Made by a program: the position numbers and the translations under genes. The notes below the pieces were generated by a model that saw only the letters and a list, made by a program, of their open reading frames with translations, was not told the origin of the DNA and ran no database searches. DNA of 64,000 nucleotides from Hyalangium minutum (GTDB taxonomy: Bacteria; Myxococcota; Myxococcia; Myxococcales; Myxococcaceae), in NCBI RefSeq assembly GCF_000737315.1, contig NZ_JMCB01000006.1:930001-994000 (forward strand), read 5' to 3'. The stretch's first letter is position 1. Every line of letters starts with the position of its first letter. This document shows positions 12,073 to 59,475 of the stretch, piece by piece.

Positions 12073-12100
12073 TCAACCCAAGTCCGTAGGCAGGTTCCCA

Positions 12101-12136
12101 AGGCCCGTCCTGGTGCTTCAGCCAGGGCGGGCCTTC
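12101..12136 (+). terminator. Stem-loop terminator-like hairpin after the adhesin gene
   Basis: AAGGCCCGTCCTGG-loop-CCAGGGCGGGCCTT inverted repeat about 30 bp after the stop codon. Confidence 0.65.
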
Positions 12137-12414
12137 CTGTTCCCGTAGGACTTGGGGGCGATGAAGTGATGACCAGCCAACGTCCCGAAGGGTGGAGCCC
12201 GGGCCTCGCGTTGAGCAGTGCACAGCGTCATCCCCTTACAAGCGTCCTGAATTCGCACCCTTACGCACAGGGCCTACGCGCTCCCGGTAGGGAGGACTCT
12301 GTCTGACCCAGCGCGTCGCGGAGGTGCCTCCCCTCTGGGCGGCCCTTCGGGGCAAGATACCGGCGAGGCCACGGCGGTCAGCCTCGACCACCTCAGCGCG
12401 AAGAGAGGTATCTG

Positions 12415-12870
12415 ATGGCACGCTCCCGGGGAGTCACCATCCTGATGGCTGACGATGACGTGGATGATCGGGATCTCACCCGTGATGCCATGCAGCAGAA
12501 TCACCTCGATGGCGAGCTGAAGTGGGTCGAGGACGGCGAGGAGCTGCTCGACTACCTGAACCGCCGGGGACGCTTCAGTGATCCGAGTGCCGCGCCGCGC
12601 CCCGGGATCATCCTGCTGGATCTGAATATGCCGCGCCTGGATGGCCGCGAGGCCCTGCGCGAGATCAAAGCCCATCCGGAGCTGCGCCGCATTCCCATCA
12701 TCGTCCTGAGCACCTCCAGCGCGGAGGAGGACGTACAGCGCAGCTACGAGCTGGGAGCCAACTGCTTCATCACCAAGCCCGGCACATTCGACCGGCTGGT
12801 CGAAGTCATCCGGGTCCTCGGCGAGCACTGGCTGCAGACAGCCACGCTCCCCCGGACGAGCCCTGCATGA
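12415..12870 (+). CDS. Single-domain response regulator (Rcp1/CheY-like)
   Basis: ADDDVDD acidic pocket, LLDLNMP phospho-Asp, LSTS, and FITKP lysine. Confidence 0.93.
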   Translation: MARSRGVTILMADDDVDDRDLTRDAMQQNHLDGELKWVEDGEELLDYLNRRGRFSDPSAAPRPGIILLDLNMPRLDGREALREIKAHPELRRIPIIVLSTSSAEEDVQRSYELGANCFITKPGTFDRLVEVIRVLGEHWLQTATLPRTSPA

Positions 12871-22100: not shown

Positions 22101-22307
22101 GTCCCACACCACCTCGGAGCCTCGGCGGAAGTACCAGACGCGGTGCCAGGGAATCTCTCCGTCCGGAACGAAGGCCTCCAGCGGCATCTCCTCCATCTGC
22201 TCGGAGTGCGAGTCGTAGCCGATGACGAACTCGCGAGCGTCGAGCCGGGGATCCCAGCGAATGCGATGGTAGACCTCGCGGCTCGTCTTGAAGCGATCCT
22301 GAGACAT
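19125..22307 (-). CDS. Multidomain RNA end-processing protein: MJ1316/DUF504, EEP phosphatase/nuclease, 2H phosphoesterase, eukaryote-type poly(A) polymerase
   Basis: SREVYHRIRWDP...IPWHRV (MJ1316). SFNV/ALQEV/GDFN/SDHF (EEP). PHVTL and PHLSV (2H). GSYLLG...SDVD, RSLNG, RAWAKARGVYS.ALGYLGGLSWA, MPIVAP..P.RNTARNVS (PAP). Start ATG 22307. Confidence 0.9.
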   Translation of the reverse strand: MSQDRFKTSREVYHRIRWDPRLDAREFVIGYDSHSEQMEEMPLEAFVPDGEIPWHRVWYFRRGSEVVWDRAKRIDTLHTLIPPEPEAPASPPPPRPPAHEKHPFTPMPFYRFDSKTSAWVEASPPPASPPETLPALTELTVASFNVLFDLYEPELLDTGRRTPAAISLLRSIDADIIALQEVTPSFLRALLDTPWIREHFFLSDGPAATTVTPYGVVLLSRFPFASLEQSIFSRDKRTIAGEIALRGGPLWVATLHLTSNKDPHSSTTRAAQIRTVLHQAQALEARGSEAPDLLILGDFNFGDGAPEEQSFEEAGFSDAWKVLRPGEPGYTYDPASNRLAAQTTSAGQSQRFDHLMIRSPSGRLKPRETSLFGEEPLSGRPAPGGGPLFVSDHFGLSCTLARETSSRERPAPVPLQGPPRVLSVPPVHQSAVVLIPPEELWGPIETLRSKYDRTYERWMPHVTLLYPFVPEEHFDEAEALITEALRELEPFQVTLSGFSHFEHRGSVTAWLSPEDRPHGAIKALQASLQNALPQCDEQGRKSENGFTPHLSVGQLPRSSPAEIRRTLSAWEQNWKPFTFEAHEVCLISRRGEGPFEVRRRVQLGGGKRTGPGSGSNSGSGTPTTKKPDPAEGAPAPQEKTGLLRSVLVSRGEWESEDARQKRTEAVSRLEAVCSGLGLQLHPYGSYLLGTGSAGSDVDAVAVGPTHLSREDFAQALLSALALEDPTTSGRFVADAAIPMVKLSLGGVHFDVSYASRPEGVEPCPPPELLERHGARLDTAGFRSLNGWADTTALLEAVKREGAGLERFRAVLRAVRAWAKARGVYSHALGYLGGLSWAVMAAWSSLRAPREAASTDERLLAHFFETFASWRWPQPVTVTPETARYHPEGKRDLMPIVAPALPPRNTARNVSRSALQVLREELTRARELVQRARTEETEASWEALFERVDFSGVASARLVVSIEAPSSEARAAAAGWVLGHLTALVYRLEGDRRLFARPFPNERPEGPFIIGLSTREHGGAEALSAKAGSPMARTVDEFRESFHTWSHRPPEASLSVQLTHS

Positions 22308-22758
22308 GGCGACAGCCCTCGAGAAGGAGAGGAGGACTCGGAGGGCTCTCGGTTCCAGAGCCGGCCTCAGCCGAGCGTACGCGGGAAGGCCCCCGCGCGC
22401 CGCACCTGGACGCCCCCCTCGTGAAGAGGCTGACACCCCATCATCCGGGGGACGTTGCCGCGAATCCGGTCCGTCAATCCGTCATCCCTCTTCACGCACC
22501 GTGCGGTACCCGCAGCGGATCCCAGTGACATGAAACGGCGGCGCAGGGACGAGCGAGACCTGGGTTCTCGCCGCACATCCGGTGCTGTTACCACTCAATC
22601 GCTACACCTCCGCCGCAGATCTCCAAGCCCGTTGCGCGAAACGCGGGTGCGCCAAGGTTCTCGAATCCCAGAAGTGATGAGTAGTGGCCGCCACAAATCG
22701 GGGAAGGTCAGCAAGACGGAGGAAATGGGACATGCCCCAACGACGACGCAACCAAGGA

Positions 22759-40950: not shown

Positions 40951-42306
40951 ATGCAGATTCCCCCGAAGAGCGCTGCGCCTTCGCTCGTGGCGTCCATTAC
41001 GCCGGGGACGAGCGTGTCCGGCACGTCCTGGCAGCGCTCCACGGCGCGCGAGGTGCCCATCTCCGAGCTGCAGCAGAAGTTCGGTTGGAAGGAGGGGAGC
41101 TGGCAGGCGGATCTGCTGAAGGCGGCGGACGCGGCGAGCCCCACGAGCTCGCGCCGGGACAACGGCAGCGTGTCGGCGGCGGAGGTGGACCGCTACCTGC
41201 AGAACCCGGGGGACGCGCGCTTCCTGACGTCCACGGCGCTGCAGCAGGAGCGCAAGGCGCTGGAGCAGAAGCTGGCGGGCGGTGCGAATTCGCTGGCGGT
41301 GGATGCGTTCGACAGTGACTGGCAGGACGCGGTGGCGCGCCGGGCGGACCTGAGCGGGGACGGGAAGGTGTCGCGCACGGAGCTGGACTCCTTCTTCACC
41401 GAGGTGAAGGCCGGCAAGGTGCAGGACGTGCAGTGGGTGCCGGATCAGAAGAGCGCGATGTTCGAGAGCAAGGTGGCCGAGAGCGCGGGAGAGGTGGATC
41501 CGCTGCGGCCGCCCGGCTCGGAGGGCCGCGGCCGGGAGCTGCTGAAGGAGTACATGCGCGTCTCGCTGGACGAGGCGAAGAACGTGCCCTCGTTCGTGAG
41601 CCACATGCTGTCGGCGGCGGACCTGGAGGAGCGGCCGCTCGACGTGGACCGGGACAAGAGCCAGTTCGAGGCGGACCCCGAGCTGGGCTCGAGCGGGGTG
41701 AAGGGCACGGACTACCGGGGCTCGGGGTTCGATCGCGGGCACATGAAGCCGGCGGCGGACTCGCCGGATCAGGCGGCGATGGACGAGAGCCACCTGATGA
41801 GCAACATGGCGCCGCAGTACCCGAACGTGAACCAGCAGTCGTGGGCGACGCTGGAGGACGCGGTGCGGGACTTGGTGAGCACCACCGGCGGCAAGGCGTA
41901 CGTGATGACGGGCAACCTGTACCTGGATGCGCAGGGCAAGTCGCTGCCGCCCGAGGCGCTCCAGACGATTGGCAACGAGGCGCGCCGCATCGCCGTGCCG
42001 ACGCACAACTTCAAGACGGTGTTGCTGGAGCTGCCCAACGGCAACCTGAGCATGTTCGCGTACATGGTGCCCAACGTGAAGGACGCGCCGAAGGGGACGG
42101 ACAACATCGCTCGCTTCCTGGAGAGCTCGCGCACGTCGGTGGACCGGATTGAAGAGCTCCTGGGGGAGGATTTGTACGCGCAGCTGCCTGAGTCCGTGCA
42201 GGCGAAGCTGGAGGCGGACAGCTCGGCGAAGCTGGCCTTCCGCGAGGCCAGCCAGTACCAGTCGGCCTCGCTGCTGCGGATGCGGGAGGCCGATACCCAG
42301 GCGTAG
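40951..42306 (+). CDS. DNA/RNA non-specific endonuclease (NucA-like) with N-terminal EF-hand-like motifs
   Basis: FDRGHMKPA, SNMAPQ...N...W..LE, VPTHNFK. DLSGDGKVSRTE EF-hand loop. No signal peptide evident. Confidence 0.88.
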   Translation: MQIPPKSAAPSLVASITPGTSVSGTSWQRSTAREVPISELQQKFGWKEGSWQADLLKAADAASPTSSRRDNGSVSAAEVDRYLQNPGDARFLTSTALQQERKALEQKLAGGANSLAVDAFDSDWQDAVARRADLSGDGKVSRTELDSFFTEVKAGKVQDVQWVPDQKSAMFESKVAESAGEVDPLRPPGSEGRGRELLKEYMRVSLDEAKNVPSFVSHMLSAADLEERPLDVDRDKSQFEADPELGSSGVKGTDYRGSGFDRGHMKPAADSPDQAAMDESHLMSNMAPQYPNVNQQSWATLEDAVRDLVSTTGGKAYVMTGNLYLDAQGKSLPPEALQTIGNEARRIAVPTHNFKTVLLELPNGNLSMFAYMVPNVKDAPKGTDNIARFLESSRTSVDRIEELLGEDLYAQLPESVQAKLEADSSAKLAFREASQYQSASLLRMREADTQA

Positions 42307-42343: not shown

Positions 42344-43243
42344 ATGGCCCTCTCCTCTGCTGCTTCCACGGCTCGCGCCACGGCGATTGGCGCGGTGGCC
42401 ATTCTGCTCTGGGCGTGCCTGGCGTTCCTGACGACGGGGACGGGGGACATTCCTCCGTTCGAGATTGTGGCGATCTCGTTCGCCATCGCGTTCCTGCTGT
42501 GCGTGGGCAAGTGGGTGCTGTTCCGCGAGGACATTGCCGGCCACCTGCGCCAGCCGGCCGCAGTGTGGGGCATGGGGGTGGGTGGGCTGTTCGGCTACCA
42601 CTTCTTCTACTTCCTGGCGCTGAAGACGGCGCCACCGGTGGAGGCGAACCTCATCAACTACCTGTGGCCGCTGCTCATCGTGCTGTTCTCGGCGCTGCTG
42701 CCGGGCGAGCGCCTGCGGTGGTGGCACATCGCTGGGGTGGTGCTGGGGCTGTGCGGCTCGTTGTTGCTGGTGACGGGCGGGGGACGCGTGGCGTTCCGGG
42801 CGGAGTACGCGGCGGGGTATGCCTCGGCGCTCGCGTGCGCGGTGACGTGGGGGGCGTACTCGGTGCTGTCGCGCCGCTTTGGGGCGGTGCCCACGGACAC
42901 GGTGGGAGGCTTCTGTGGGGCGACGGCGGTGCTCGCGGCGCTGTGTCACGGGGTGTTCGAGCGCACGGTGTGGCCGAGCCCGGCGGAGTGGGGCGTGTTG
43001 CTGCTCATGGGCGTGGGGCCCACGGGCTTGGCGTTCTTCGTCTGGGATGTGGGGATGAAGCGGGGGAACATCAAGGCGCTGGGCGGGCTCTCTTACGCCA
43101 CGCCGCTGCTCTCCACGCTGCTGCTCATCCTGGCGGGAAGGGCGAGCCCGAGTGTGGAGCTGGCCCTGGCCTGTCTGTTCATCGTCGGCGGCGCGGTGCT
43201 CGCCTCGCGGGACTTGTGGGCGCGGACTACCCGCTCAACATGA
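42344..43243 (+). CDS. DMT/EamA (YddG-like) transporter
   Basis: About 10 TM helices in two EamA repeats, EANLINYLWP, AGGAGG Shine-Dalgarno before ATG 42344. Confidence 0.9.
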   Translation: MALSSAASTARATAIGAVAILLWACLAFLTTGTGDIPPFEIVAISFAIAFLLCVGKWVLFREDIAGHLRQPAAVWGMGVGGLFGYHFFYFLALKTAPPVEANLINYLWPLLIVLFSALLPGERLRWWHIAGVVLGLCGSLLLVTGGGRVAFRAEYAAGYASALACAVTWGAYSVLSRRFGAVPTDTVGGFCGATAVLAALCHGVFERTVWPSPAEWGVLLLMGVGPTGLAFFVWDVGMKRGNIKALGGLSYATPLLSTLLLILAGRASPSVELALACLFIVGGAVLASRDLWARTTRST

Positions 43244-43508
43244 CTTCGGAGAGGGTCGTGGCCTTCAGGGCGCGATCGAACCACTGATCGAGCGTGTCCA
43301 GGTCTGTGCACGACAGGATGCGCTGGCGATCCGCATCGAGCACGGGGATGCCACGGGCAGCCAGGATCTTGAGGACGCTGTGGGCCCGTTCGAGCGCCTG
43401 GCCTTCCGCCCGCCCTTCCGCTCGCCCTTCCGCTCGCCCTTTATCCAGGCCCTCCACCAAGCCTCGGGCGTGTCCCTTCTCCATGAGCATTTCCGCGATG
43501 GTGCGCAC
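43227..43508 (-). CDS. Putative intragenic in-frame small protein (RpnS-like antitoxin), 93 aa
   Basis: AAGGAGGAG followed by CAG then an in-frame GTG (43508), giving VRTIAEML. Confidence 0.55.
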   Translation of the reverse strand: MRTIAEMLMEKGHARGLVEGLDKGRAEGRAEGRAEGQALERAHSVLKILAARGIPVLDADRQRILSCTDLDTLDQWFDRALKATTLSEVMLSG

Positions 43509-44267
43509 CTGCTCCTCCTTGCTGTGCTCACTGGCCACTGAATTTAACACGCGCCACAGCGCTTCGTAGGCAGCGTCCCGGCCTACGTAAAACAGGTAAT
43601 GCACCACGGCGTGTAGCTGCTCCACACCTTGCGGAGAATCCAGCAATTCGGCCAGCAACGGTCTCCACCGGTCCAACAACACGGCGACGTGTTCGGAGCG
43701 GCCGAAGCGCAGCAGCAGCAGCGCTAGTGGCACCAGGGGTGGACCCGCCCGAGCCCTGAGCACCTCCTCTCGCTCCGCTGTCAGGTCGTCCACCAGATAC
43801 TCCAAGCGTGGCACCAGCACCTGCCATCGCTCCGCACCTTCTTTCGGAAGATGGAACAGCTCCTCCATCCTTCGGGGCGCCGTCCAGCCACTCTCCGGCC
43901 CGTGATACAGCACTACGGGAATCACCACGGGCAGCGCTTCGCTGTCCGGGTGCCGTTGAAGCCAGTGCTCCAGCTGGCGCACCACGTAGCGCAGCATTCG
44001 GAAGGCCATCCATCGGTCTACCGAGGACTGGTGCTCCAGCAGGAAGTAGAGCAGCACGGGCTGCCCGCAATGGAGCCGGGCCGAGAACAGCAAGTCGCTC
44101 TGGCTCTCACGCAGCTTGGGGTCCACCACGGTCCCCGACTCATGCTGGAGCGTAGACCAGTCCACCCGGGCAGCCACTTCGGGTGGCAACACGGCTCTCA
44201 GCTCCGCCGCTGCCCGCTCGGGGTGACTGAAGGTGTAGCGCGCGAACAAGTCATGAGGCCCCGGCAT
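43227..44267 (-). CDS. Rpn family recombination-promoting nuclease / YhgA-like putative transposase (Transposase_31)
   Basis: HDLFAR.TF, SDLLFS...LEHQS...MAFRMLRY, PVVLYHG, TIAEML, and GRAEG repeats. Start ATG 44267. Confidence 0.92.
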   Translation of the reverse strand: MPGPHDLFARYTFSHPERAAAELRAVLPPEVAARVDWSTLQHESGTVVDPKLRESQSDLLFSARLHCGQPVLLYFLLEHQSSVDRWMAFRMLRYVVRQLEHWLQRHPDSEALPVVIPVVLYHGPESGWTAPRRMEELFHLPKEGAERWQVLVPRLEYLVDDLTAEREEVLRARAGPPLVPLALLLLRFGRSEHVAVLLDRWRPLLAELLDSPQGVEQLHAVVHYLFYVGRDAAYEALWRVLNSVASEHSKEEQVRTIAEMLMEKGHARGLVEGLDKGRAEGRAEGRAEGQALERAHSVLKILAARGIPVLDADRQRILSCTDLDTLDQWFDRALKATTLSEVMLSG

Positions 44268-44517: not shown

Positions 44518-47500
44518 TCAGGGCAGCGTCACCTCGTAGTACGTGCGTTTCTCTCCGGGTCGCTCACCCGGCCAGACCGCCCAGCCTTCCCAGGCGCCGC
44601 CCTGCTTGCGCAGGCACCGTGTGTGGACGCGCATGCGCTTCAGGTCGCGCTGAACCTCCAGCAGGTTGAACAGGCGCGGAACGGACTCGGGACGGTGGTG
44701 GGTGGGAGCACCGAAGCTCCCTGCGCCCACGACATGGAGCCGCCGTCCCGGATGCAGGTAATTCACCAGGTCGGCTCGATCCTCGTGCACGTGTCCGTGG
44801 AGACAGGCGCGGATGTCCGCCTGCAGCAACCGGCCCATGAAAGAGTCCGCCTGGATCTTCTCGTTGCCCGTGATGGGGTGGTGCCACACCGCGATTCGCA
44901 GCACCTGGGCGTCCTCCTGAAGCTCACCCCGCTTCCGTGCTCCGGCCAGCTCGAGGTGGGCGGCCTCGAGGCCACGGGAGAGGGCCCGCTCGGAGATGCT
45001 GGAGCGCTCGGTGAAGTACTCGTCGATCTCCCAGGCCGAGTTCATGGCCAGGAACTGGATGCGCGACTCGCTGAAGAAGAAGGAGAGGCACTGCTCCTCG
45101 GACGCCAGCGGGTACGGCCGCTGCATGAGCGGGTGGTAGAAGTGCTGGGAGAAGTTCTTGAAGCGCTCCGGATACTTCGCCTCGTCCCGCAGGTAGTACC
45201 CGTCACCGTCCTCCTTGTACGTGCCCGGCACGAGCGCGCGGGCGTCCACCTGGCGCTTCTTCTTCCGGGTGTACACCTCCGTGTCCCAGTCCAGGTCGTG
45301 ATTGCCCGGCACGAGGATGCAGCGCTCGGACGTGAGACCGAACCGCTCGATGAGCGAGGACACGAACTCGCGCGCCTTCTCGAACTCCTGGGGTGAGGCC
45401 CTGTTGGTGAGGTCTCCCGAGATGACCAAATAGTCCAGCCTGTCCACCCCGAGCCCGTCGTACCGGTCCTTCAGGTCCGCATCCAGCGGCTGGAGCAGGC
45501 TCAAGGGATCCTGCGTGGCGCCCACATGGAGATCGCTCAGGTGGAGGATGCGCAGCGGGGTGTCAGCGGAGGTTTTCACGGTCTTGGCCTCGGTGATGCT
45601 CACCCTCGTCTCGGTGATGTTTTGGGAGCGCTGCTCTTGAATGTCGGTGCGCAGCGCTCGGACCTGCTGGTGCAGCTCGGGGTTGCGCTCGCGTGCCTGT
45701 TGGGCGCCCAGCGTCAGCGGTGTCCGGCGATCGCACACGGGGCATCCAATGTCCGAGTGGCCCACGTGGAGCCGCTCCCGGACGACGTCCTCGGCGAACA
45801 CCCGGCCACACGTGCAGGTGATACTCAGCCGCTCCAGCAGCTCCACCCCCTGCTCGCGCAGGTGCTCCTCGATGATGTTCACGAACAGCGCGCGGGTGGT
45901 GGTGGGCGTCTCCGGATCGAAGTAGACGTCGAGCCGTGCGTGGCCACGAGCCCCCTGGCGGCCCTCACGCACTCGGCGGACGCCCGAGCTCTCCTGGCCT
46001 GCAAGGCTGAACTCGGCCCGGTCTTGCCACAGCCGCATGGGACCAAACCGGCGGCTCAGCGCGAGCGAGGTGACCAGCGAGGCGTAGATGTTGTCGATGG
46101 GGCCGGAGAAGTCGTAGTGCAGCGAGATGGCGTGCGGGAAGTCCTGGCCTGCCTCCTGCTGCGTCGGGCGGAAGAGCGAGGGGAAGATGAGCAGCCCCTC
46201 ATGGCGCAAGCAGAGCCCGTGCTCGAGCAGCAGCTCGATGACGCAGTCGAGCACCAACAGCTCCTGGTCGCGAGGCAGGCGCTCCGCGGCGGCGAGGCGC
46301 GGGAACTTCATGGCTGGGGAGAGCACCTTGGCCACGTCGATGGCGGGCACTCCGTGGGGATTGTCTCGCGCGGCGAGGATGAGCGAGCCGGCGTAGCGCT
46401 CCACCTGCTCCACTTCGAGGACGAGGACGCGGGTGCCGTCGGCCAGCCGTGTGTCGGCGACACGCCCCTGACGGGCGAGCGGTCCCACGACGGAGCGGAG
46501 CACCTCCGGGTCGAAGTCGTTGCCCATCTCCCGCCGCAGCTCGGCCTCCAGCTGCGAGAAGGTGAGCACCACGTGCCGGGCTTCGCGCAGCTGCTGCAGG
46601 TGCTGGCGCATGCGCTGGAAGAGCTCCGGGCGACTGACCTGCTCGATGCTGTTCCAGTCGATGGCCTCGGCCAGCGCGGCCTTCAGCTCGGGGATGCCCT
46701 GGCCCGTCTTGGCACTGGTGGACAGATAGGAGGTGAACTGGCAGCGCTGCACCAGCCGCTCGATGGCGGGCAGATCCACCGGCGAGTCCAGGCTGTCCAC
46801 CTTGCTGCCCACCAGGAGCTTGCGGATGTTCCGGGTGCCGGTGTGCGCCAGGAGGCGCTGGTTCCAGCCTTCGATTTCCTCCAGGGCCCGCTCGCCGCGT
46901 CCCGGCTCCATGACCATCACGGCAGCGGTCGAGTCCCGCAGGAAGAGCTGATGCACGAGCTGGTACTCGTTCTGTCCTCCCATGTCCCAGAGGATGAGCT
47001 CGCGCCGCGTCTGGGCGCTGGTGGGGTCCGAGCGCTGGGGCTCCGCCGGGAGGGACCAGAACCGCATCCCGTGGGTGGACTCCATCTCTTCGTAGCGATC
47101 CTGAGCCATGCGCAGCGCGAGGCTGCTCTTTCCCGCGCGCCCTTCCCCCACGAGCACCACCTTCGCGCTGACCTCGTGGACGGTGGCGGACGGAGGCTTG
47201 GCTCTCAAGAGAGTGTCCGCGTCGATGTCCCAGAGAAAAAGGCTGCGGAAGTCTGGTCCCACGGAGGCCAAGATGTTGCGCGTGGGAGAGAAAGCCACTC
47301 CCCGAGTCAGGAATTTCTTCGAGGAGGGGGACTGGAAGCGTGCCACTATCTCCCAGGTATCGGTGCGGAACAGGAGAATGTCTCCAGTCGTCGAATGGGA
47401 GGCGAGCAGGCGGCCATCTGCGGAGAACGAGACGGACAGCACCGAGGCTGTGTGGCCTTCCAATCGCGTCACTGTGCGGTCTTGCTCGGCATTCAAGACA

Positions 47501-49323
47501 TGGATGCCGCCATCTGCCGTCGCTAGTGCCAAAAGCGGTGAGTGCGGCCTCCAAGTTAGGTCGAGCACCCCGAAGCCCTGCATTGAAGATGCAAGCGTGG
47601 GCACGAACCGGTTATCCACTTCGCTCAGCCGCCAGAGGATGAGACAGGACCCACCTTGGGCATTAATAAAGCCGCAGGCTAGGATGGGTGCATCGGGAGC
47701 CCAACCCAAGCAACTCACAGGCTCGAGCGGTGCTGGCCTTGTGAGTTCACCCAGGAACTTGCGGGTGGGCGTGTTCCAGATGCGCAGGTTTCCCTGCCCG
47801 ACATCAGCGGCGAGCCAACCTAATGAAGAGCAGGCGAGTCTGTTCCCGTCACCGGCTGGGAGTAGCTCGACCTCGATGTCGCTGGGGGTCCCTTTCGTGT
47901 GCAAGAGCCGGAGAGCACGTTTGGAGCGCGAGAGAAGGGTTTCTCCGTCCGGCGTGAAGCAGAGGTCCGTAACGACGGTCGTGTGAGCAGATGCTATCCA
48001 GGAAGGGATCTGCTCTGCGAGGGGCCAGTACGCCAGATGCCCTTGTTCGCACCCAATTGCCAGCGCATCGCCGGATGGACTCCAGGCCAGCCGGCTTACG
48101 GTTTGGCGGCCCGTCCCCAGCACTTGGCGAAGCCGGATCCCCAATGGGAGCGGAGAGGGTTCTGGCATATCCTCCCGGATCCAGGGGGCCTGCGAGGAAC
48201 TGTTCCTGGGAGACGGTACGTCTTCCGGAGGCGTGCGCGTCAACAGAGGGAACCAGAGTGGAGAATCCGTGCGGTTCTCACCAGTCAGCTCACTGGGATA
48301 TTGGATCAGCGCAGCCAGGGGTATGGAAGTTGTGTCGGGCTCCCAGCTCCATTTAGCTTGGAGCGTGGTGAACAGTTCCTCCTGCGAGGAGAGGGGGCGG
48401 GAATGAAGCCGGAGCTTGGACTTGTAGATTTCTCCCACGGCGTATCCCCAAAAAAAAGTGTCGGCTCCTGTCTCCCCGAAGAGCGACAAAGCCTGCACTG
48501 CTCGAGCCCAGTGGGAGTATTGGGGAGGATCGGGCCAGGGTTCCCTCCACCCTGTTATGTCGAACCCACCGCACAGGTGCAGGAAAGGACGGCCTGAGGG
48601 GCCAAGTCTCTCGTGCAGGCGTGCGAGGGACTTGGATCTCAAGACTCCCGGTGGAGCATGCGTCAGCAGCAGGATCAGCTCATGCTGATGCGCCCAACGT
48701 TGGAGGTCGTGGCCAGTGGCAGCCTCCGCTTGCTCTACGTTGATTTCTCGCTGGCTCTCACTGCTGTCTGTACCAGGCTCGAAGACAGAGTTGAGACCGA
48801 TAACGCCGATCTTCCATTCGCCCGCCTTCACTGTCGTAGAGAAGTCTCCGGGTAGGAAACCGTTCCGCAGCTGGATCAAAGGTGAGTGCAGGCGTTGCTG
48901 CTGGGAAGCCCACTCTGTGTAGGCTTGGAACGCGCCGCTGACGACGTGTGTGGAGGAAGGACTTACGGCATGGCTGAAGGTTTTGGGAAACTGAGAAGCA
49001 GTGGTGCGGAGGAACAGGCTCGAGGAAGCATCACGCGGCGCAAAGTCTGATTCCCCAGGGACCGCGAGTAGCAAGGGATTCGAACCCAGGCTTCGAAAGT
49101 AGTCCCACAAGGAGTTCAGCGTGGAATTCAATAGCGCGAACTCACGGGGGCTGCCCGTCTGCGTCAGATTCCCAGTGAGGAACACCACGTCCCAAGGCCC
49201 GGCTTGGTCGTGGAGCTTGCGCAGATCGGTTTCAAGGGCCTCGCGGAACTCGGGGCGCATCAGCCGCGAGCCGTGGGGCCCGAAGAGAAGATCCGACAGG
49301 TGAAGCCAGCTGAACCGCGACAC
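44518..49323 (-). CDS. Roco-type protein: degenerate metallophosphoesterase, WD40, Roc GTPase-COR, Zn ribbon, intact calcineurin-like metallophosphoesterase
   Basis: G1 GEGRAGKSS, G2 STHG, G3 WDMGGQ, G4 SKVD, G5 SAKTG. CTCG...CPVC. C-terminal SDLH/GD/GNHD/HH/HGHVH versus N-terminal SDLL/GN/GESD. GGAGG Shine-Dalgarno before GTG 49323. Confidence 0.88.
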   Translation of the reverse strand: MSRFSWLHLSDLLFGPHGSRLMRPEFREALETDLRKLHDQAGPWDVVFLTGNLTQTGSPREFALLNSTLNSLWDYFRSLGSNPLLLAVPGESDFAPRDASSSLFLRTTASQFPKTFSHAVSPSSTHVVSGAFQAYTEWASQQQRLHSPLIQLRNGFLPGDFSTTVKAGEWKIGVIGLNSVFEPGTDSSESQREINVEQAEAATGHDLQRWAHQHELILLLTHAPPGVLRSKSLARLHERLGPSGRPFLHLCGGFDITGWREPWPDPPQYSHWARAVQALSLFGETGADTFFWGYAVGEIYKSKLRLHSRPLSSQEELFTTLQAKWSWEPDTTSIPLAALIQYPSELTGENRTDSPLWFPLLTRTPPEDVPSPRNSSSQAPWIREDMPEPSPLPLGIRLRQVLGTGRQTVSRLAWSPSGDALAIGCEQGHLAYWPLAEQIPSWIASAHTTVVTDLCFTPDGETLLSRSKRALRLLHTKGTPSDIEVELLPAGDGNRLACSSLGWLAADVGQGNLRIWNTPTRKFLGELTRPAPLEPVSCLGWAPDAPILACGFINAQGGSCLILWRLSEVDNRFVPTLASSMQGFGVLDLTWRPHSPLLALATADGGIHVLNAEQDRTVTRLEGHTASVLSVSFSADGRLLASHSTTGDILLFRTDTWEIVARFQSPSSKKFLTRGVAFSPTRNILASVGPDFRSLFLWDIDADTLLRAKPPSATVHEVSAKVVLVGEGRAGKSSLALRMAQDRYEEMESTHGMRFWSLPAEPQRSDPTSAQTRRELILWDMGGQNEYQLVHQLFLRDSTAAVMVMEPGRGERALEEIEGWNQRLLAHTGTRNIRKLLVGSKVDSLDSPVDLPAIERLVQRCQFTSYLSTSAKTGQGIPELKAALAEAIDWNSIEQVSRPELFQRMRQHLQQLREARHVVLTFSQLEAELRREMGNDFDPEVLRSVVGPLARQGRVADTRLADGTRVLVLEVEQVERYAGSLILAARDNPHGVPAIDVAKVLSPAMKFPRLAAAERLPRDQELLVLDCVIELLLEHGLCLRHEGLLIFPSLFRPTQQEAGQDFPHAISLHYDFSGPIDNIYASLVTSLALSRRFGPMRLWQDRAEFSLAGQESSGVRRVREGRQGARGHARLDVYFDPETPTTTRALFVNIIEEHLREQGVELLERLSITCTCGRVFAEDVVRERLHVGHSDIGCPVCDRRTPLTLGAQQARERNPELHQQVRALRTDIQEQRSQNITETRVSITEAKTVKTSADTPLRILHLSDLHVGATQDPLSLLQPLDADLKDRYDGLGVDRLDYLVISGDLTNRASPQEFEKAREFVSSLIERFGLTSERCILVPGNHDLDWDTEVYTRKKKRQVDARALVPGTYKEDGDGYYLRDEAKYPERFKNFSQHFYHPLMQRPYPLASEEQCLSFFFSESRIQFLAMNSAWEIDEYFTERSSISERALSRGLEAAHLELAGARKRGELQEDAQVLRIAVWHHPITGNEKIQADSFMGRLLQADIRACLHGHVHEDRADLVNYLHPGRRLHVVGAGSFGAPTHHRPESVPRLFNLLEVQRDLKRMRVHTRCLRKQGGAWEGWAVWPGERPGEKRTYYEVTLP

Positions 49324-53273: not shown

Positions 53274-56200
53274 TCACTGCCCGCCCTGCTGCGGGTCGAG
53301 GTAGTCCCAGGCCCGGGTGTCGACCCGGGAGCCTTTGCCCAGGAACGTGAAGAAGTGGTTGGGGTTGTAGAACACGTCCTTCTCCATCTGCCGATCGAAC
53401 ACGAACAACTGGAAGGCCGAGTACAGCCGGTGGTTGAGGTTCAGGTTGTACAAGCTCGAGCTGTGCGGCGCGACAGCACGCGTTGGCAAGGCAAGCAACG
53501 CCTGGTTCGGATTCACCCGCTCTCCCGCGGGCGTCACGAACGAGCTCCGGAGCTTCACCATCATCCGCCGCCAGCGCGGCTGCTGGAGCACCCGCTCCAA
53601 GTCATTGTTGACGGCCTCGTAGTCGGCGTTGGTGCCCGGCATGATCTGCCGGTGGTCCACCTCGGTGTCCACGTGGGTGACGTAGAAGTCCCGGAGCGCC
53701 CTCAGCGTCCACCCCTCGCTCCGGGCGCGGAGGATAATCTGCCGCGCGCTGAGCCCGTGCAGCGCCAGCTCGTGGGACATGACGAGCGCCATGCCCCCGG
53801 GATGCCAGGTGACCATCCCGCCCAGCGCCATGTAGAGGAAGATCCGCAGGTGTTGGTTGGGATCGAACCCCGGCAGCTCCCGTGACAGCGAATACAGGGG
53901 CACCCAGTGCCCACCGGGAGTGGTGGTGTCCGAGGGATCCCGTACCTGAATGCCGCACCATCCATCAATGTCAGCCGGCTGCCGCCGGACGGTCATCACC
54001 AGCGGCACGTAGTCCGGCGCGTCCGGATCGCAGAAGGGCTCGATGGCCCGCTCCTGGAAGGCGTCCGAAGTCTCGATGATTTCGAACAGCTGCGGAATCA
54101 TCGCCTTCGCCGCGGCGTAGCCCTCGATGGGCGGCCACGTGGAGGGCTCGGGCGTGGGCTCGGGCTGCGGGGTGCCCACTGCGTCCCCGCTGGAGCCCTC
54201 GGTGCCGCCCGTGGGCTGGCGGCCCTCGGCGCCGTTGCGGACTTCCACCTGGGACTCGCCGACGCTGACCTCCATGCCCGGGCTCTGGCGGACGGCGCCG
54301 ATGGTCTCCATCAGGTCCATCTGCTGCAGCGGGGACTCCTGCTTCCCCGGCTGTGAGCCGCCGCCGAGCTGCGCCTGGAGCACCCGCTCCTTCCACTCCT
54401 GGTTCTTCTCCGGGTACTTGCTGGGCGGGAAGGCGCGGTCGATCTGGTCGTTCAGGTTGGCGGCGTTGCGGCTGCTCTGGGCCGCCATGGCCAGCTGGGT
54501 GGCCATCTGGGCGTAGGACTTCGCGGCCTCCTGGTTGGACGTCATCGCCGCCAGCGCGTTCTTCTGGTTCTGGTCCAGGCCGGTGAGGTTGGCGAACGGG
54601 CTCGCCTGCCCGAGCGCCGTCAGCAGCGCGCCCACCCCCGTCGGATCCGGAGCGGCCGGCGCGTTCTGGATGTTGACCACCGGCTGCGCCAGCGGCGAGG
54701 GCTTGGTGTCCTGCGGCGCCTGGTAGCGGCTGTCCGTGCTGACGGGGTTGATGGCGGTGGGCTCGTCGATGGGGGACTGCTCCCAGCGCCAGAACCGCGT
54801 GTCGTCGATGCGCTCGCAGGCGTTGCAGGCCCCGCGCACCGCCTCGGCGAAGACGCCCGGCGTGGGCACGCTCAGGCGGAAGGCGATCTTCTGGCCGCCC
54901 TCGCGCTCGGCCTCCGTCTGGTAGTGCTCCAGCAGGGAGGCGAAGGCCGTGGCCGCGCTGCCGCTCACCTCGGGTCGGCCCAGCTCATAGGTCGGGTCGA
55001 GGTTGAAGCCGCGCGCCACCGGGAAGATGAGGCAGTTGCCCGCCACGCCCAAGAGCCGGTTCTCCACCAGCGACGCCAGCGAGCGCCCCAGCACTCCGCG
55101 CTGCGCGTAGACGGTGTTGAACTCGTCCTGCGCCAGGTGGATGCGGTCCAGCATCATGTACCGCCGGTGCGGGGTGATGCCGTGGCACCAGATGACGTGG
55201 TGGTAGTACTCGAGGTTCTCCCGGTTCAGGTGGTCCCGCAGCTGCTGGGCCATCCGCTGGTCCTCCTGCCACGGGTTGCGCTGCTCCTCGGGGGTGAGTG
55301 GCGTGGGCAGGAAGATCTGATCCGCGAAGCCAATGTCGTTGCGGATGGCCCGGTCGTTCAGCAGCACGCCCGTGTGGTGGCGCGTCCGGTAGCGCAGCGT
55401 GCCCCGGTCGAGGATGGCGAAGCTGCCCGACACGCTCACGCTCGGGGACAGCAGCCGCAGGCCCACCACCTGGCTGCGCTTCAGGTCCGTGGGCGTCCCG
55501 GAGAAGCCCTGCCGGTTCACTCCCGCCTGCAGGGCCTTGGGGTCCTGCACCCGCGTGGAGCGCACCGACACCGTGAGCGGCTTGCCCGGCGCGTAGTCCG
55601 TCAGCAGCGTGCAGTCCAGCCGCATGTCCCTCACCGTGGTGCCGTCCGCGAGGATGGCCTCGAAGCGCAGCTGCTCCACGAAGTTGCGCGCCAGGGCCGG
55701 GGCGTGCTGCTCCTGGAAGGCGCGGTCGCGCTCGGCGGCCGTCATCTTGACGAAGAGGTTGCGGACACCGTTGAGCTCCAGGCCCCGGAAGAGGTGGCTC
55801 AGGGTGGCCCAGGTGTTGATGTCCAAGGTGCCATCCTGCGCGTCCGCCGGGCGGCTCAGCGTGAGCCGCAGCTGGAACTCACCGAAGACTTCATCGATGG
55901 ACTCCTCGCAGAAGGGCAGGAACGTCACCGTGCCATTGGCCTCGCGGCGCTGCGGGAAGTCCACACCCTGGTAGTTGCGAGAGATTCGCTCGACGGCGTC
56001 GAAGCCCTTGCGCAGCTCCTGGCCCTTGGCCGTGTCCGGCCCGTAGAGCAGGTGCTCGGAGAGGCACTCGCGCCAGCGGAGCACCTTCCCGTCCGTGAAG
56101 CGGCTCATCGTCAGCGGGACGAAGAGGCACTCCTGCACGTCCACCAGCTCCTGCTGGACGACGAAGTGCCGGAGGATTTCGAAGTACTGGATGGTGAGCG

Positions 56201-58259
56201 CGTGGCAGTGGTTGTGGTTGGCCACCACCTCCGTCTGCACGGAGAACGTCTCGCCCTGGCGTGCGCTGGTGACCACCGTGGAGCGCTGGCTGCGCACCGA
56301 GGAGGTGGCCTGCATCGTCGAGTCCCTCAGGCGGTTGTGCAGGCTGGACGTCATGTCGCGCGTGTTGTCCTGCCACGCCGACGAGGTGCCCGAGCCCCCC
56401 GAGAGGTTGAAGCCCGTGGCGATGCCCAGGGACATGTTGTCCTTGCTGCCGCTGCCCGCCAGCCCCAGGCCCGCGGACCAGCCCTTCGTCTTGGCCTTGC
56501 TGCCGCCCTTCATGGACTCGCTCAGGGTGCCGGTGAGGATCTCGTCGATGTCCCGGTCCCGCGAGAGGCTGTGGCTCAGCTGCTCGGAGACATCGGTGCT
56601 CTCGGCGCGCGAGGCCTCGTCCACGCGGTTCCAGTCGTAGATGACGAGCTGCTTCTTCTGCCCGGGCGCCAGCGGCAGCGAGTAGAGCAAGTCCCCCATG
56701 GAGTAGCCGTCCGCCTTGAACGTCTGCTTGAAGTGGAGGACGTGGCCGTGGGCGAGCGTGACGGCCTGGTAGAGCTCGAACTCGGTGGCCTCGTCGTCCC
56801 AGCGGATGGGGTTCTTGGGCCCGAGCGTCTGCCGCAGCGTGCGGTGCAGGTGCTTGGCGTAGCCGGCGGTGTCCGCCGTGTTGCCATTCCACTCCCAGCG
56901 AGGATTCTCGTTGATGGGCACCAGCTGGCCGCGCGGATCCGTGGTCCGCACGATGGCGTGGTGGCTGAACTCCTCCAGCGTGCGGTTGGGCACGGTGAAG
57001 TTGACGCACGAGCCGCCGATGTCCTGCGAGTAGCTGGACTCGCCGGCGACGAGCTCCTCGGTGCCCGGCAGCCGGGGGGTGGGCTCATGGCAGGCGCAGT
57101 CCTCGTCCGCGCCACCTGGAGTGGGAGACTCCTCGGCCTCGATCACCAGCTGGGTGAAGGCAGGGAAGCGGCCATCGGCGTCGAGCAGCACGGGGCAGGG
57201 CGTGTCCGGGCGGGCGGAGACCACGGCATAGGCGCCGGTGAACGGCTCGTTGGGGAGCACCGCCGAGAAGCTCCCGGTGCTGTGCGTGCTCACCGTGGCC
57301 AGCGGTACCTCCACGGGCTTGCCATCCGCGCCGAGGCGCTGGCCGTAGAGGATGATCTGCTGGCTCTTCATGGCCTTGCCGGTGCGCTCGACGAGCCGGC
57401 CCTTGAGGACGCGGGTGCTCGTGGGAGCGCTGGAGCCGGGGGTGAGGACGGGAGGGGTGAATGGCTCCACCTTCACCTCGAGCGAGGCGAGCTTGAGCGC
57501 CTGGGTCAGGGTGAGCTGGGGCGGCGAGACGATGCGCGCGGGCAGCCCGTTGGGGGTGCGCACCACGAGGGTGAGGGGGCTGTCCGCAAAGCGGCCCGAG
57601 GCGGTGAAGTCCACCTGGAAGGCGCCGTTGTAGCCGAGCGTGATTTCCCGGTGGATGGGCGTGGCCTTGTCATCCAGGGCGATGGTGTCGGGGCAGGAGA
57701 TCTCCAGCACATAGCCTGCGATGGACTCGCTGGTGCGGGTGCTGGTGACGAAGCCTCGGAGGGGGAACAGCCGCAGCTCCTCCGCGGGCACGGGCGCGCC
57801 CGCCGCAGAGGGAGCCTTGGGCGTGTTGCTCACGGTCTGCACGGTCCCGGACGAGGTGTTCGCCTTGGAGGTCTCCGTCTGCGCCTCCTCCACGAGCACC
57901 GGGGCGCGGGTCGCGGTGGAGGCCTCGAGCTTCACCACCTTCTCGACGGCCTCGGGTGAGGGCAGCTCGAGGATGACGAGGCGCGCGGTCTCGGCGGCCT
58001 TGGTCTCCGCGAGCAGCACCGCGTCCAATGAGGCCTTGTCCGGGAAGCTCCGCTCGGCGAGAGCGGCTCCGTCCTGGAGCACGAACAAGGTGAGGGGATA
58101 GGAGAGCTTCGAGGAGGTGATGCCCTTGAGGAGGAAGTCGCCTTCGGGGCTCGTGAGCTCCCCGGTGAAGAGCGGCGCTTCGGGCTTGGCACCGAGGACG
58201 AGCTTGAGGGACGGGAGGACACTGCTGTCGGAGAAGTTCAACTGCCCATAGAGTTTCAT
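53274..58259 (-). CDS. 1661-aa protein of unknown function: Ig-like N-terminus, conserved-looking core with a possible beta-pore-forming hairpin, C-terminal HExxxH domain
   Basis: Long ORF with strong GC3 bias. Core motifs GDLLYSLPLAPGQKK, VANHNHCHALTIQYFE, PTPGVFAEAV.G.CNACE..D.TRFW.W. No signal peptide. Confidence 0.8.
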   Translation of the reverse strand: MKLYGQLNFSDSSVLPSLKLVLGAKPEAPLFTGELTSPEGDFLLKGITSSKLSYPLTLFVLQDGAALAERSFPDKASLDAVLLAETKAAETARLVILELPSPEAVEKVVKLEASTATRAPVLVEEAQTETSKANTSSGTVQTVSNTPKAPSAAGAPVPAEELRLFPLRGFVTSTRTSESIAGYVLEISCPDTIALDDKATPIHREITLGYNGAFQVDFTASGRFADSPLTLVVRTPNGLPARIVSPPQLTLTQALKLASLEVKVEPFTPPVLTPGSSAPTSTRVLKGRLVERTGKAMKSQQIILYGQRLGADGKPVEVPLATVSTHSTGSFSAVLPNEPFTGAYAVVSARPDTPCPVLLDADGRFPAFTQLVIEAEESPTPGGADEDCACHEPTPRLPGTEELVAGESSYSQDIGGSCVNFTVPNRTLEEFSHHAIVRTTDPRGQLVPINENPRWEWNGNTADTAGYAKHLHRTLRQTLGPKNPIRWDDEATEFELYQAVTLAHGHVLHFKQTFKADGYSMGDLLYSLPLAPGQKKQLVIYDWNRVDEASRAESTDVSEQLSHSLSRDRDIDEILTGTLSESMKGGSKAKTKGWSAGLGLAGSGSKDNMSLGIATGFNLSGGSGTSSAWQDNTRDMTSSLHNRLRDSTMQATSSVRSQRSTVVTSARQGETFSVQTEVVANHNHCHALTIQYFEILRHFVVQQELVDVQECLFVPLTMSRFTDGKVLRWRECLSEHLLYGPDTAKGQELRKGFDAVERISRNYQGVDFPQRREANGTVTFLPFCEESIDEVFGEFQLRLTLSRPADAQDGTLDINTWATLSHLFRGLELNGVRNLFVKMTAAERDRAFQEQHAPALARNFVEQLRFEAILADGTTVRDMRLDCTLLTDYAPGKPLTVSVRSTRVQDPKALQAGVNRQGFSGTPTDLKRSQVVGLRLLSPSVSVSGSFAILDRGTLRYRTRHHTGVLLNDRAIRNDIGFADQIFLPTPLTPEEQRNPWQEDQRMAQQLRDHLNRENLEYYHHVIWCHGITPHRRYMMLDRIHLAQDEFNTVYAQRGVLGRSLASLVENRLLGVAGNCLIFPVARGFNLDPTYELGRPEVSGSAATAFASLLEHYQTEAEREGGQKIAFRLSVPTPGVFAEAVRGACNACERIDDTRFWRWEQSPIDEPTAINPVSTDSRYQAPQDTKPSPLAQPVVNIQNAPAAPDPTGVGALLTALGQASPFANLTGLDQNQKNALAAMTSNQEAAKSYAQMATQLAMAAQSSRNAANLNDQIDRAFPPSKYPEKNQEWKERVLQAQLGGGSQPGKQESPLQQMDLMETIGAVRQSPGMEVSVGESQVEVRNGAEGRQPTGGTEGSSGDAVGTPQPEPTPEPSTWPPIEGYAAAKAMIPQLFEIIETSDAFQERAIEPFCDPDAPDYVPLVMTVRRQPADIDGWCGIQVRDPSDTTTPGGHWVPLYSLSRELPGFDPNQHLRIFLYMALGGMVTWHPGGMALVMSHELALHGLSARQIILRARSEGWTLRALRDFYVTHVDTEVDHRQIMPGTNADYEAVNNDLERVLQQPRWRRMMVKLRSSFVTPAGERVNPNQALLALPTRAVAPHSSSLYNLNLNHRLYSAFQLFVFDRQMEKDVFYNPNHFFTFLGKGSRVDTRAWDYLDPQQGGQ

Positions 58260-58364: not shown

Positions 58365-59357
58365 TCAGCCCAGCCGCTCCAGCTCCCGGGTGAGCAGCGT
58401 CTCGAGGTCGCGGATGCTGCGGTAGACGATGCAGCGGTACGAGGCCACGTCGAAGCGCAGCTCCTTCACGTCGCGCACCAGCAGCACGGTGGGGCGGCCC
58501 CGGCCCCACGCATAGCCGACCTCCAGATACACGTTCGGGTTGGCCATGGAGAGGTCGGCGATGACGACCTTGGCCGTGTCAATCCGCTCGCGGATGCGCT
58601 GGATGATGGGGCCGTCGAAGGCGGCTTGGTCCACGCGCTCGCAGAGCATGCCGGTGGACTTCACGGGGCCGAGGATGCCGTAGTGGTAGGTGTCCTCCAG
58701 CTCGGGCTCGAAGGGCATGGCCACGAAGGCGTGCGGCTTCTGCATGGAGGTGGTGCCCGCGGTGGCCATGGGCGGGGCCTGGACGAAGGCGCTCATGCGC
58801 TGCACGCGGAAGCCACCGCCTGGCAGGGGCTGGACGCCGGGGGTTCCTCCGAGCCCGCGCTCCAGTGCCTTGCGCAGCCGCAGGGCGCGCCGCGGGTCGA
58901 GCTCCACGAGCGTGACGCGCTCCAGGGTCTCGGGGCCGGTGCCGCGCTGGAAGGCCTCTACCAGTCCGCCGGCGAGCGCGAGCACGGCCTCGTCCTCATC
59001 CAACCCATAGTTGGGGCCGTGCACGGTGCTGGCCAGGCGGCGCAGGCCGGGGCGGGACTCCAGGGCCTTGAGCGCGCGGACGGCGAGCTGGCGAATCTCG
59101 TGGTACCCGAGCTGGTTGAGGCGCACGGTGCCGAGGAACAGGGCCAGCGGGGCCGTCAGTGCGCCGCGTGTCTCCACGAAGCGAGCATCTCCGACAGGGG
59201 CTTCGAGGTCTGACTTGGGGACGCCCACGGCATCGAGCCGCTGCGAGACGACGCCCGACACTCCATAGAAGCTCTGCGCGTACTTGAAGAGCGCCACGTC
59301 CGCGCGCGCCTCGGTGATGTCTCCTGCCTCCAGCACCAATTCGAGGGCCGTGCTCAT
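58365..59357 (-). CDS. Macro-like domain fused to a nucleoside 2-deoxyribosyltransferase-like (TIR-like) domain
   Basis: LEAGDITEARADV (macro GDI motif). AFVAMPF...RVD...IADLSMANPNVYLEVGYAWG (NDT-like, with the catalytic Glu). Start ATG 59357. Confidence 0.82.
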   Translation of the reverse strand: MSTALELVLEAGDITEARADVALFKYAQSFYGVSGVVSQRLDAVGVPKSDLEAPVGDARFVETRGALTAPLALFLGTVRLNQLGYHEIRQLAVRALKALESRPGLRRLASTVHGPNYGLDEDEAVLALAGGLVEAFQRGTGPETLERVTLVELDPRRALRLRKALERGLGGTPGVQPLPGGGFRVQRMSAFVQAPPMATAGTTSMQKPHAFVAMPFEPELEDTYHYGILGPVKSTGMLCERVDQAAFDGPIIQRIRERIDTAKVVIADLSMANPNVYLEVGYAWGRGRPTVLLVRDVKELRFDVASYRCIVYRSIRDLETLLTRELERLG

Positions 59358-59475
59358 GTCGAGCCACTGTAACCGGCGGAGAGGGCGCTCCGTACAGGTT
59401 GGTGAAACCACCTCACCAGACAGGAGCCTACTCATGTGCATTCACTCGGTGGGCAGCGCTTCGTTAGAGTAGCCC

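Follow-up and report, generated by a model that had tools for sequence, protein, structure and literature searches.

Architecture of the Roco gene

A single Roco-type gene is encoded in the 64-kb window of Hyalangium minutum DNA analysed here (RefSeq assembly GCF_000737315.1, contig NZ_JMCB01000006.1, positions 930,001 to 994,000). The gene occupies positions 44518..49323 of the window on the minus strand, as do all its features described below, and codes for a protein of 1601 amino acids, with the stop codon at 44518-44520 and a GTG start codon at 49323. It is a real and intact gene. The GTG is the first start codon past the preceding stop codon and has a GGAGG sequence 4 nt upstream, while the codon-position G+C content (GC1 0.66, GC2 0.47 and GC3 0.81) is in line with that of the other genes in the window, which has an overall G+C content of ~68%. 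Thirty-eight full-length homologues, among them proteins of Hyalangium, Archangium, Polyangium and Sorangium, share 45-83% identity with the encoded protein and have the same start position.

From its N- to its C-terminus the protein comprises a catalytically dead metallophosphoesterase (MPE) domain, a WD40 beta-propeller, a Roc G domain, a COR domain, a CxC..CxxC ribbon and an intact MPE domain. An initial annotation of the window, made from the sequence alone, had set out this order with an N-terminal pseudo-phosphoesterase, WD40 repeats, a complete Roc G1-G5 with COR, the ribbon and an intact calcineurin-like domain, and each of these elements is borne out by the analyses below. Neither a STAND domain (NACHT or NB-ARC; Pfam and NCBIfam) nor a PUA domain (Pfam) was detected in the protein.

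The WD40, Roc-COR and zinc ribbon regions

The WD40 beta-propeller (residues 395-712; 47188..48141), the presumed sensor, is matched by Pfam WD40/beta-propeller families with E values down to 3.6e-21, and in the PDB it matches 2ymu (E 1.9e-25). The Roc (Ras-like) G domain that follows (residues 716-890; 46654..47178; Pfam Roc E 1.3e-19, Ras E 1.1e-19) contains the G1 (GEGRAGKS), G2 (T750), G3 (DMGGQ), G4 (SKVD) and G5 (TSAK) motifs, all of which are conserved in the alignment of 24 homologues from which the motif and residue conservation figures given here are derived. The catalytic-type Gln is present in G3, and G4 takes the form (S/T/A)K(V/L)D across the homologues, with S, T or A instead of N.

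Residues 890-1255 gave no match in Pfam, the COR models of which were negative, and a family profile of residues 888-1240 produced chance matches only among the PDB sequences. An AlphaFold (AF2) model of this region, built on a 16-sequence alignment (pLDDT 79, pTM 0.77), has two winged-helix-like units, after which come an alpha/beta subdomain and a small ribbon. When this model was compared with the PDB using Foldseek, the best 19 matches were Roco proteins in 19/19 cases; the top match was the COR of C. tepidum (3dpt_A; E 3.9e-9, 320 columns, TM 0.48/0.55), and 6hlu, LRRK2 (8fo9) and LRRK1 (8fac) were among the further matches, which include C. tepidum Roc-COR and LRR-Roc-COR structures (LRR, leucine-rich repeat). 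By this structural comparison a COR domain is therefore present in a divergent form (residues 891-1165; 45829..46653), and the protein is a true Roc-COR tandem with COR immediately C-terminal to Roc. The relative P0297 joins the same MPE clade as that of the C-terminal domain to a canonical Pfam COR-B (E 1.1e-32). The two defining features tested, the G1-G5 motifs of Roc and a COR domain placed after it, put the protein in the Roco family.

COR is succeeded by a CxC..CxxC zinc ribbon (residues 1166-1205; 45709..45828), the four cysteines of which (C1170, C1172, C1194 and C1197) are invariant in the 24 homologues. A long helix, at 320-352 of the model, and a linker (residues 1206-1254; 45562..45708) lie between the ribbon and the effector.

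The C-terminal metallophosphoesterase

The presumed effector is an intact calcineurin-like MPE (residues 1255-1601; 44521..45561; Pfam Metallophos E 7.6e-17) with the five motifs D1264-x-H1266, G1303-D1304, G1340-N-H-D1343, H1481-H1482 and G1510-H-V-H1513, all of them invariant in the homologues. Its best NCBIfam match is DS9_1_antiphage (E 1.6e-28; 99.8 bits against a cut-off of 420), over profile positions 162-483 of 486, which make up the phosphatase part, and the second is DS8_antiphage (E 4.2e-18; 64.5 bits against a family cut-off of 790). Among the models of housekeeping enzymes, TIGR00619 (SbcD) matches with an E value of 1.8e-10 and YaeI with 0.02. By sequence, the domain is closer to the anti-phage DS-9A and DS-8 proteins than to the housekeeping MPE families, a similarity at the level of the clade only, as the scores fall below the equivalog cut-offs. 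Relatives sharing 45-60% identity with this domain are fused to TIR, EAD1, EAD11, a receiver domain or a canonical Pfam COR-B. DS-8 (metallophosphatase-NACHT) and DS-9 (metallophosphatase and HAD) protect E. coli from phages and require the catalytic residues of the phosphatase to do so (DeWeirdt et al., PMC13092281). Calcineurin-CE, the DS-9-type enzyme, converts deoxynucleoside diphosphates (dNDP) to the monophosphates (dNMP) and NAD+ to nicotinamide mononucleotide (NMN) and AMP (10.64898/2026.01.15.699771), and in Metis it is an NAD+ diphosphatase (10.1101/2025.11.05.686725).

PADLOC models PDLC00736 ('Effector / Endonuclease', E 8e-15) and PDC-S60 (E 1.4e-12) also match the domain, and its AlphaFold model (pLDDT 78.5) is most similar in Foldseek to B. 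subtilis YydB (9a6c_B, E 6.8e-13), followed by Rv0805 (3.5e-8), GpdQ (1.8e-7) and Mre11-Rad50 (9bi5_B, 1.1e-5). The PDLC00736, SbcD and Mre11-Rad50 matches, together with the adjacent zinc ribbon, which could bind nucleic acid, would fit an effector that serves the same immune logic as an Mre11/SbcD-type nuclease, acting on the DNA or RNA of the invader or the host. However, the SbcD match is restricted to the first 86 residues of the domain, which hold the generic motifs I-III, the fold of Mre11 matches far less well than those of YydB, Rv0805 and GpdQ, and the top family match is DS9_1, whose enzyme acts on dNDP and NAD+ (10.64898/2026.01.15.699771). Because the fold is closest to these three proteins and the match to Mre11 is weaker, a nuclease, an effector suggested in the initial annotation, is less likely than a nucleotide phosphodiesterase/pyrophosphatase, which the domain resembles in sequence and modelled fold, and is considered very unlikely here; the substrate is likely a small nucleotide rather than DNA.

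The N-terminal metallophosphoesterase domain has lost its catalytic motifs

When the isolated N-terminal 400 residues were searched against Pfam, no match was obtained, and detection of the domain formed by residues 1-335 (48319..49323) thus needed profile-profile comparison. The family profiles of this domain and of the C-terminal MPE align with 98.1% probability (hhalign; E 1.1e-13, 294 columns), and within the protein itself the two domains are matched by BLASTP with an E value of 2e-7 over motifs I-III. Greater similarity is observed to the intact N-terminal MPE of P0039, a protein which also carries TIR (40% identity, E 4e-52), and to the MPE-NACHT protein P0047 (33% identity, E 1e-36). 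Where active relatives contain DxH / GD / GNHD / HH / GHxH, the N-terminal domain has DLL / GN / GESD / THAPP / HLCGG. The five metal-binding motifs are thus lost while the fold and the homology are retained, which marks the domain as a pseudoenzyme. None of the N-terminal copies in a motif census of 47 Roco proteins (0/47) has all five motifs, GHxH is kept in one, and the catalytic motifs that have been lost differ between lineages. A Pro/Ser-rich linker (residues 336-394; 48142..48318), which is poorly conserved (mean pairwise identity 0.19), connects the domain to the propeller.

The closest relatives of the dead domain are N-terminal phosphoesterases in other multidomain proteins, rather than the C-terminal MPE of the same protein. 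These relatives are fused to TIR, NACHT, NB-ARC and TPR, caspase, SAV_2336-N and bDLD1 domains, and they keep all the catalytic motifs. An origin of the dead domain as a recent copy of the C-terminal MPE was considered and rejected, given that the non-Roco proteins P0039-P0076 match the N-terminal domain with up to 315 bits; the profile of this domain scores only 12-42 bits on the C-terminal MPEs of its own family. The two MPE domains are therefore homologous but derive from different effector clades. From these sequence relationships, both are assigned to the calcineurin superfamily's conflict-effector branch. The Calcineurin-CE conflict-effector clade was reportedly defined by Nicastro et al. 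in 2023.

Distribution of the Roco-phosphoesterase family

A profile of the COR and ribbon regions was searched against 1.84 billion cluster representatives (clusters at 50% identity) and matched 1377 proteins (clusters) at E <= 1e-3, 359 of them at E <= 1e-30. The best 149 of the 1377 matches include 68 complete WD40-Roc-COR-(ribbon)-MPE proteins, mostly of ~1200 amino acids, and the CxC..CxxC ribbon is present in most of the 149. An N-terminal phosphoesterase-like domain was found in 12 of the 68 complete proteins and is lacking in the other 56. Homologue loci occur in the Myxococcota, Acidobacteriota, Planctomycetota and Verrucomicrobiota (Verrucomicrobiia) and on cyanobacterial plasmids, and several genomes encode two to three Roco paralogues. 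The WD40-Roc-COR-ribbon-MPE core is a widespread family without a name, within which the protein encoded in the window represents a myxobacterial subfamily with an extra dead MPE. The description of the protein as a 'new' immune receptor in the initial annotation was accordingly overstated, with the core present in 1377 clusters and Roc-COR systems predicted earlier (PMC8195603).

Two conjugative megaplasmids of Nostoc encode the WD40-Roc-COR-ribbon-MPE core, with 31% identity over 98% of the Roc-COR-ribbon-MPE region (L035, 7984-13179; L036, 8008-14072). One of the two copies is fused to a C-terminal NACHT domain (1731 aa), while the other is followed by a separate NACHT gene, and both adjoin genes for a MoxR ATPase and SAV_2336-N proteins, as well as transposases and an IS630 element. 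It is unusual for one protein to unite a GTPase switch with a STAND ATPase, as the Nostoc fusion does.

Some homologues are interrupted. In L008 a 1.3-kb insertion (11038-12359) containing a 407-aa open reading frame (ORF) separates the ribbon from the MPE, and changes of reading frame occur inside the genes of L002 (about 8900) and L023 (about 9470 and about 11760). These copies may be pseudogenes or long-read assembly errors.

Evolutionary rates and selection on the dead domain

The protein's N-terminal half, comprising the dead MPE and the propeller, evolves faster than the half containing the switch and the effector. Mean pairwise identity among the 24 homologues is 0.42 for the dead MPE and 0.40 for WD40, as opposed to 0.68-0.70 for Roc, COR and the live MPE. 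The same partition was observed when the gene was compared with its orthologue in the related locus L037 in terms of identity, the ratio of non-synonymous to synonymous substitution rates (dN/dS) and the synonymous rate (dS). The dead MPE (66% identity, dN/dS 0.34, dS 0.71) and WD40 (60%, 0.28, 1.05) have diverged further than Roc (95%, 0.09, 0.34), COR (94%, 0.09, 0.36) and the live MPE (90%, 0.16, 0.33). L037 itself carries a tandem pair of Roco genes at this locus (4404-9182 and 10001-14773), the products of which are 70-82% identical in Roc, COR and MPE and 44-46% identical in the dead MPE and WD40. That dS differs two- to three-fold between parts of a single gene points to a mosaic history, in which the N-terminal half may have been exchanged or the C-terminal half homogenised between paralogues. 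An immune receptor would be expected to couple a fast-changing N-terminal module to a conserved switch and effector, and the pattern seen here suggests, though it does not prove, such a role.

An alternative reading is that the dead domain is a decaying remnant devoid of function, with the protein working in the manner of the commoner ~1200-aa WD40-Roc-COR-ribbon-MPE proteins that do without it. The absence of the domain from 56 of the 68 complete distant relatives, the differences between lineages in the motifs lost and the low identity among homologues (0.42) would all be in keeping with decay. However, dN/dS is 0.34 in the comparison with the orthologue and 0.32 in that with a paralogue, which indicates that the domain is under purifying selection, and a non-catalytic role is therefore plausible. 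Moreover, 26 of residues 1-335 are invariant in the 24 homologues, the domain is of full length and aligns end to end with its active relatives, and it persists in Archangium, Hyalangium, Polyangium and Sorangium alike. Decay without function is accordingly regarded as highly improbable.

Proposed function

The reading favoured here, to which a probability of about 0.6 is assigned, is that the protein is a single-protein, NLR-like conflict sensor, probably directed against phages and acting by abortive infection, in which a Roco GTPase stands in place of the STAND ATPase. Confidence in any single step of the mechanism is much lower than that in the general immune logic. At rest, the protein would be held off, possibly, by analogy with the Roco protein of C. 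tepidum, as a dimer formed through COR and either GDP-bound or empty. The fast-evolving N-terminal half, that is the propeller with or without the dead MPE, would bind a protein or ligand derived from the invader, and this binding would shift the nucleotide state of Roc and the conformation of Roc-COR, such that the C-terminal MPE is freed or assembled. The live MPE may then hydrolyse small nucleotides (NAD+, dNDP or the triphosphates dNTP, or a cyclic or linear nucleotide), leading to the collapse of a nucleotide pool required by the invader and to arrest of the cell. The dead MPE would most likely be a non-catalytic partner of the live MPE, masking it in cis or templating its assembly, and not an enzyme.

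A different part for the dead MPE, considered distinctly unlikely, is that of an integrated decoy or pseudo-receptor, a silent copy of a common immune effector placed within the sensor half. As such it could detect phage-encoded inhibitors of Calcineurin-CE, or bind a nucleotide signal without destroying it, and binding to the dead domain would fire the Roc-COR switch and the live effector. If true, bacteria would have an equivalent, built on a GTPase of the LRRK2 type, of the integrated decoys found in plant NLRs.

Genomic context and a possible role in cellular signalling

The Roco gene is preceded by a histidine kinase and a sigma-54 response regulator gene, which are divergently oriented, and a gene coding for a 239-aa protein, and is followed by an Rpn/Transposase_31 gene (43227-44267, minus strand; E 8e-45), the likely ATG start of which (44267) lies ~250 bp downstream of Roco. 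Beyond Rpn, on the other strand, are genes for an EamA-type transporter and a NucA-like endonuclease. The same gene order is found in three relatives (L017, L002 and L037), and nothing is conserved around the Roco gene beyond the syntenic genomes.

The Rpn gene, which the initial annotation had pointed out as a neighbour on the same strand, was indeed found there but is not a feature of the family. In the syntenic loci it is complete in L037 (15044-16084) and partial in L017 (9465-10106, aa 129-346). As its presence next to Roco is confined to the window, L037 and, in part, L017, all of them syntenic, and it is absent from the loci of other genomes, it was rejected as a family-wide partner. 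The 239-aa gene, 26 bp upstream, was likewise rejected as a partner, since it has no family match and is restricted to the syntenic loci; its product, a secreted or membrane protein, begins with a signal peptide and contains a Pro-rich stretch as well as membrane segments rich in Gly and Ala. No HAD partner gene adjoins Roco, the flanking genes being that for the Pro/Gly-rich secreted or membrane protein upstream and Rpn downstream.

Several observations weigh against an immune function. The locus is syntenic in related myxobacteria, and the immediate neighbours of the homologues (99 genes in 30 loci, surveyed with Pfam and PADLOC and given as raw counts) are mostly metabolic, transport and regulatory genes, with three integrases and three DDE transposases among them. 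PADLOC identified one strong GajA match and a few single matches in this set, no chromosomal defence island is evident around the homologues in these 30 loci, and the loci of P0034 and P0031 are surrounded by peptidase and metabolic genes. The protein as a whole is matched by no model of PADLOC or NCBIfam. A scan of viral contigs for Roco relatives found none, and the single match in a phage record covers only part of the MPE (24% identity). Response-regulator receiver domains are attached to some of the live MPE's relatives, which fits ordinary signalling, and the nearest solved enzymes of this domain include the cyclic-nucleotide phosphodiesterase Rv0805. A search of the literature found no experimental validation of a bacterial Roco protein in defence, nor of the present family, and the proposed trigger, substrate, oligomeric state and dead-domain role are inferences.

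A rival reading is a role in housekeeping or developmental signalling, in which the protein would be a Roco-controlled phosphodiesterase of cyclic nucleotides or small molecules within the large eukaryote-like signalling repertoire of myxobacteria, its WD40 propeller a scaffold for cellular partners, and immunity would play no part. The position of the gene in conserved chromosomal synteny, with housekeeping genes around it and the histidine kinase and sigma-54 response regulator beside it, favours such a role, as do the metabolic neighbours in other genomes, the presence of both Rv0805 and GpdQ among the nearest solved enzymes, the annotation of relatives as CpdA-like and the receiver-MPE fusions. 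The Ser/Thr kinase and the other WD40 protein of the window point in the same direction. However, the curated models that best match the live MPE are those of the anti-phage DS-9 and DS-8, not CpdA or Icc, and both MPE clades occur in fusions with TIR, NACHT, caspase, Death-like and EAD domains. Similarly, the Nostoc plasmid copies occur with NACHT beside MoxR/SAV_2336-N systems, the paralogues have expanded, with a tandem duplicate and a fast-evolving N-terminal half, and the neighbourhoods are conserved in close relatives only, hence there is no conserved operon partner. Signalling is therefore viewed as a somewhat unlikely explanation.

The proposal of an immune receptor in the initial annotation thus retains the support of the effector-clade fusions, the DS-9 and DS-8 matches and the fast-evolving N-terminal half, and its sensor-switch-effector logic that of a domain order which is real. 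The co-localisation of homologues with defence islands that it had named as a check was not found in chromosomes (PADLOC on the 99 neighbours in 30 loci). Conservation in core housekeeping synteny with no association with defence, which it had named as counting against the proposal, is neither plainly seen nor plainly absent: the gene stands alone, with synteny that is local only and no evident defence island, and the Nostoc plasmid copies differ.

Other genes of the window

A NucA-type non-specific endonuclease of 451 aa (40951-42306, plus strand; Endonuclease_NS E 4.4e-38) is encoded 2 kb from Roco and is conserved in the syntenic loci. On the minus strand, a gene at 58365-59441 codes for a 358-aa protein, the C-terminus of which matches the PADLOC model PDLC00733 ('Effector TIR', E 3.3e-13) and, weakly, the Pfam family Nuc_deoxyrib_tr. 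Directly downstream of it is an ORF of 1661 aa (53274-58259, minus strand) with good coding statistics and no Pfam or PADLOC match, which is apparently absent from the syntenic locus L017, a comparison limited by the contig end. These two genes may constitute a second, variable conflict locus 4 kb from Roco. The 1103-aa protein encoded at 19125-22436 (minus strand) brings together an MJ1316 RNA cyclic-end recognition domain with EEP nuclease/phosphatase, 2H (LigT-like) phosphoesterase and poly(A)-polymerase-type nucleotidyltransferase domains, and looks like an RNA end-healing or repair enzyme. A 2905-aa surface protein (3355-12072, plus strand) carries 18 Big_9/cadherin-like repeats, DUF11 and a C-terminal OmpA domain. 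The Ser/Thr kinase and additional WD40 protein also encoded in the window are typical for myxobacteria.

Comparison with known systems

Roco GTPases owe most of their prominence to LRRK2 and Parkinson's disease, and to our knowledge next to nothing is known of what their bacterial members do in the cell. The present protein resembles the C. tepidum Roco, LRRK1/LRRK2 and DAPK1 in that Roc is directly followed by COR, in the fold match of its COR, and in the combination of N-terminal repeats with a C-terminal enzymatic output. It differs from them in having WD40 repeats for the usual LRRs, a COR invisible to Pfam, a zinc ribbon after COR, a calcineurin-like MPE rather than a kinase as its output, and an extra dead MPE at the N-terminus. 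The C. tepidum Roco forms a dimer mediated by COR-B, becomes monomeric upon GTP binding and has a low nucleotide affinity (PMC6337361; PMC5714945; PMC11052575).

Bacterial Roc-COR proteins, there called AP-GTPase-COR, were predicted by Kaur, Iyer, Burroughs and Aravind in 2021 to be counter-invader systems that carry LRRs and, at the C-terminus, one of at least 24 effectors, those named in the part of the account drawn on here being GT4, TIR, DRHyd, caspase, trypsin, FGS and EADs (PMC8195603). A variable sensor repeat, Roc-COR, a C-terminal conflict effector and the presence of several paralogues per genome in multicellular bacteria are common to these systems and the present family. The sensors of the former are, however, LRRs, neither a calcineurin-like effector nor a dead effector copy is named in that part of the account, and the systems are a prediction only (PMC8195603).

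With DS-8 the protein shares the union of a metallophosphatase effector and an NTPase switch in one polypeptide (PMC13092281), and the DS8 model matches both its live MPE (4.2e-18) and the active relatives of its dead MPE. The switch of DS-8 is, however, a NACHT ATPase and its effector is N-terminal, and the present protein, which scores below the cut-off, is not a member of that family. DS-9 (PUA-Cal-HAD, type I Metis) provides the best curated match of the live MPE and a model for its chemistry, namely the hydrolysis of dNDP or NAD+. Unlike DS-9, the present protein has no PUA sensor and no HAD partner gene, and shows no sign of a filament. STAND NLR-like proteins such as Avs and bNACHT likewise join an effector, an NTPase switch and a repeat sensor, and the dead MPE is homologous to the active N-terminal effectors of NACHT/NB-ARC proteins; the switch of the present protein, in contrast, is a small Ras-like GTPase with COR, and it has no STAND ATPase. 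The protein is thus not a STAND/NLR, DS-8 or DS-9 protein, and the likeness of its logic to theirs is one of analogy, on paper.

The Roco family described here offers a compact, large and tractable test case, with an enzymatic read-out related to effectors validated in E. coli. If it is defensive, Roc-COR would be added to the immune modules common to bacteria and eukaryotes, alongside NLRs, TIR, cGAS and gasdermins, and the dead effector domain would represent a rare bacterial pseudoenzyme built into an immune receptor. Roc-COR conflict systems as such have been predicted since 2021; what sets the present protein apart from them is a dead effector domain that has been maintained by selection.

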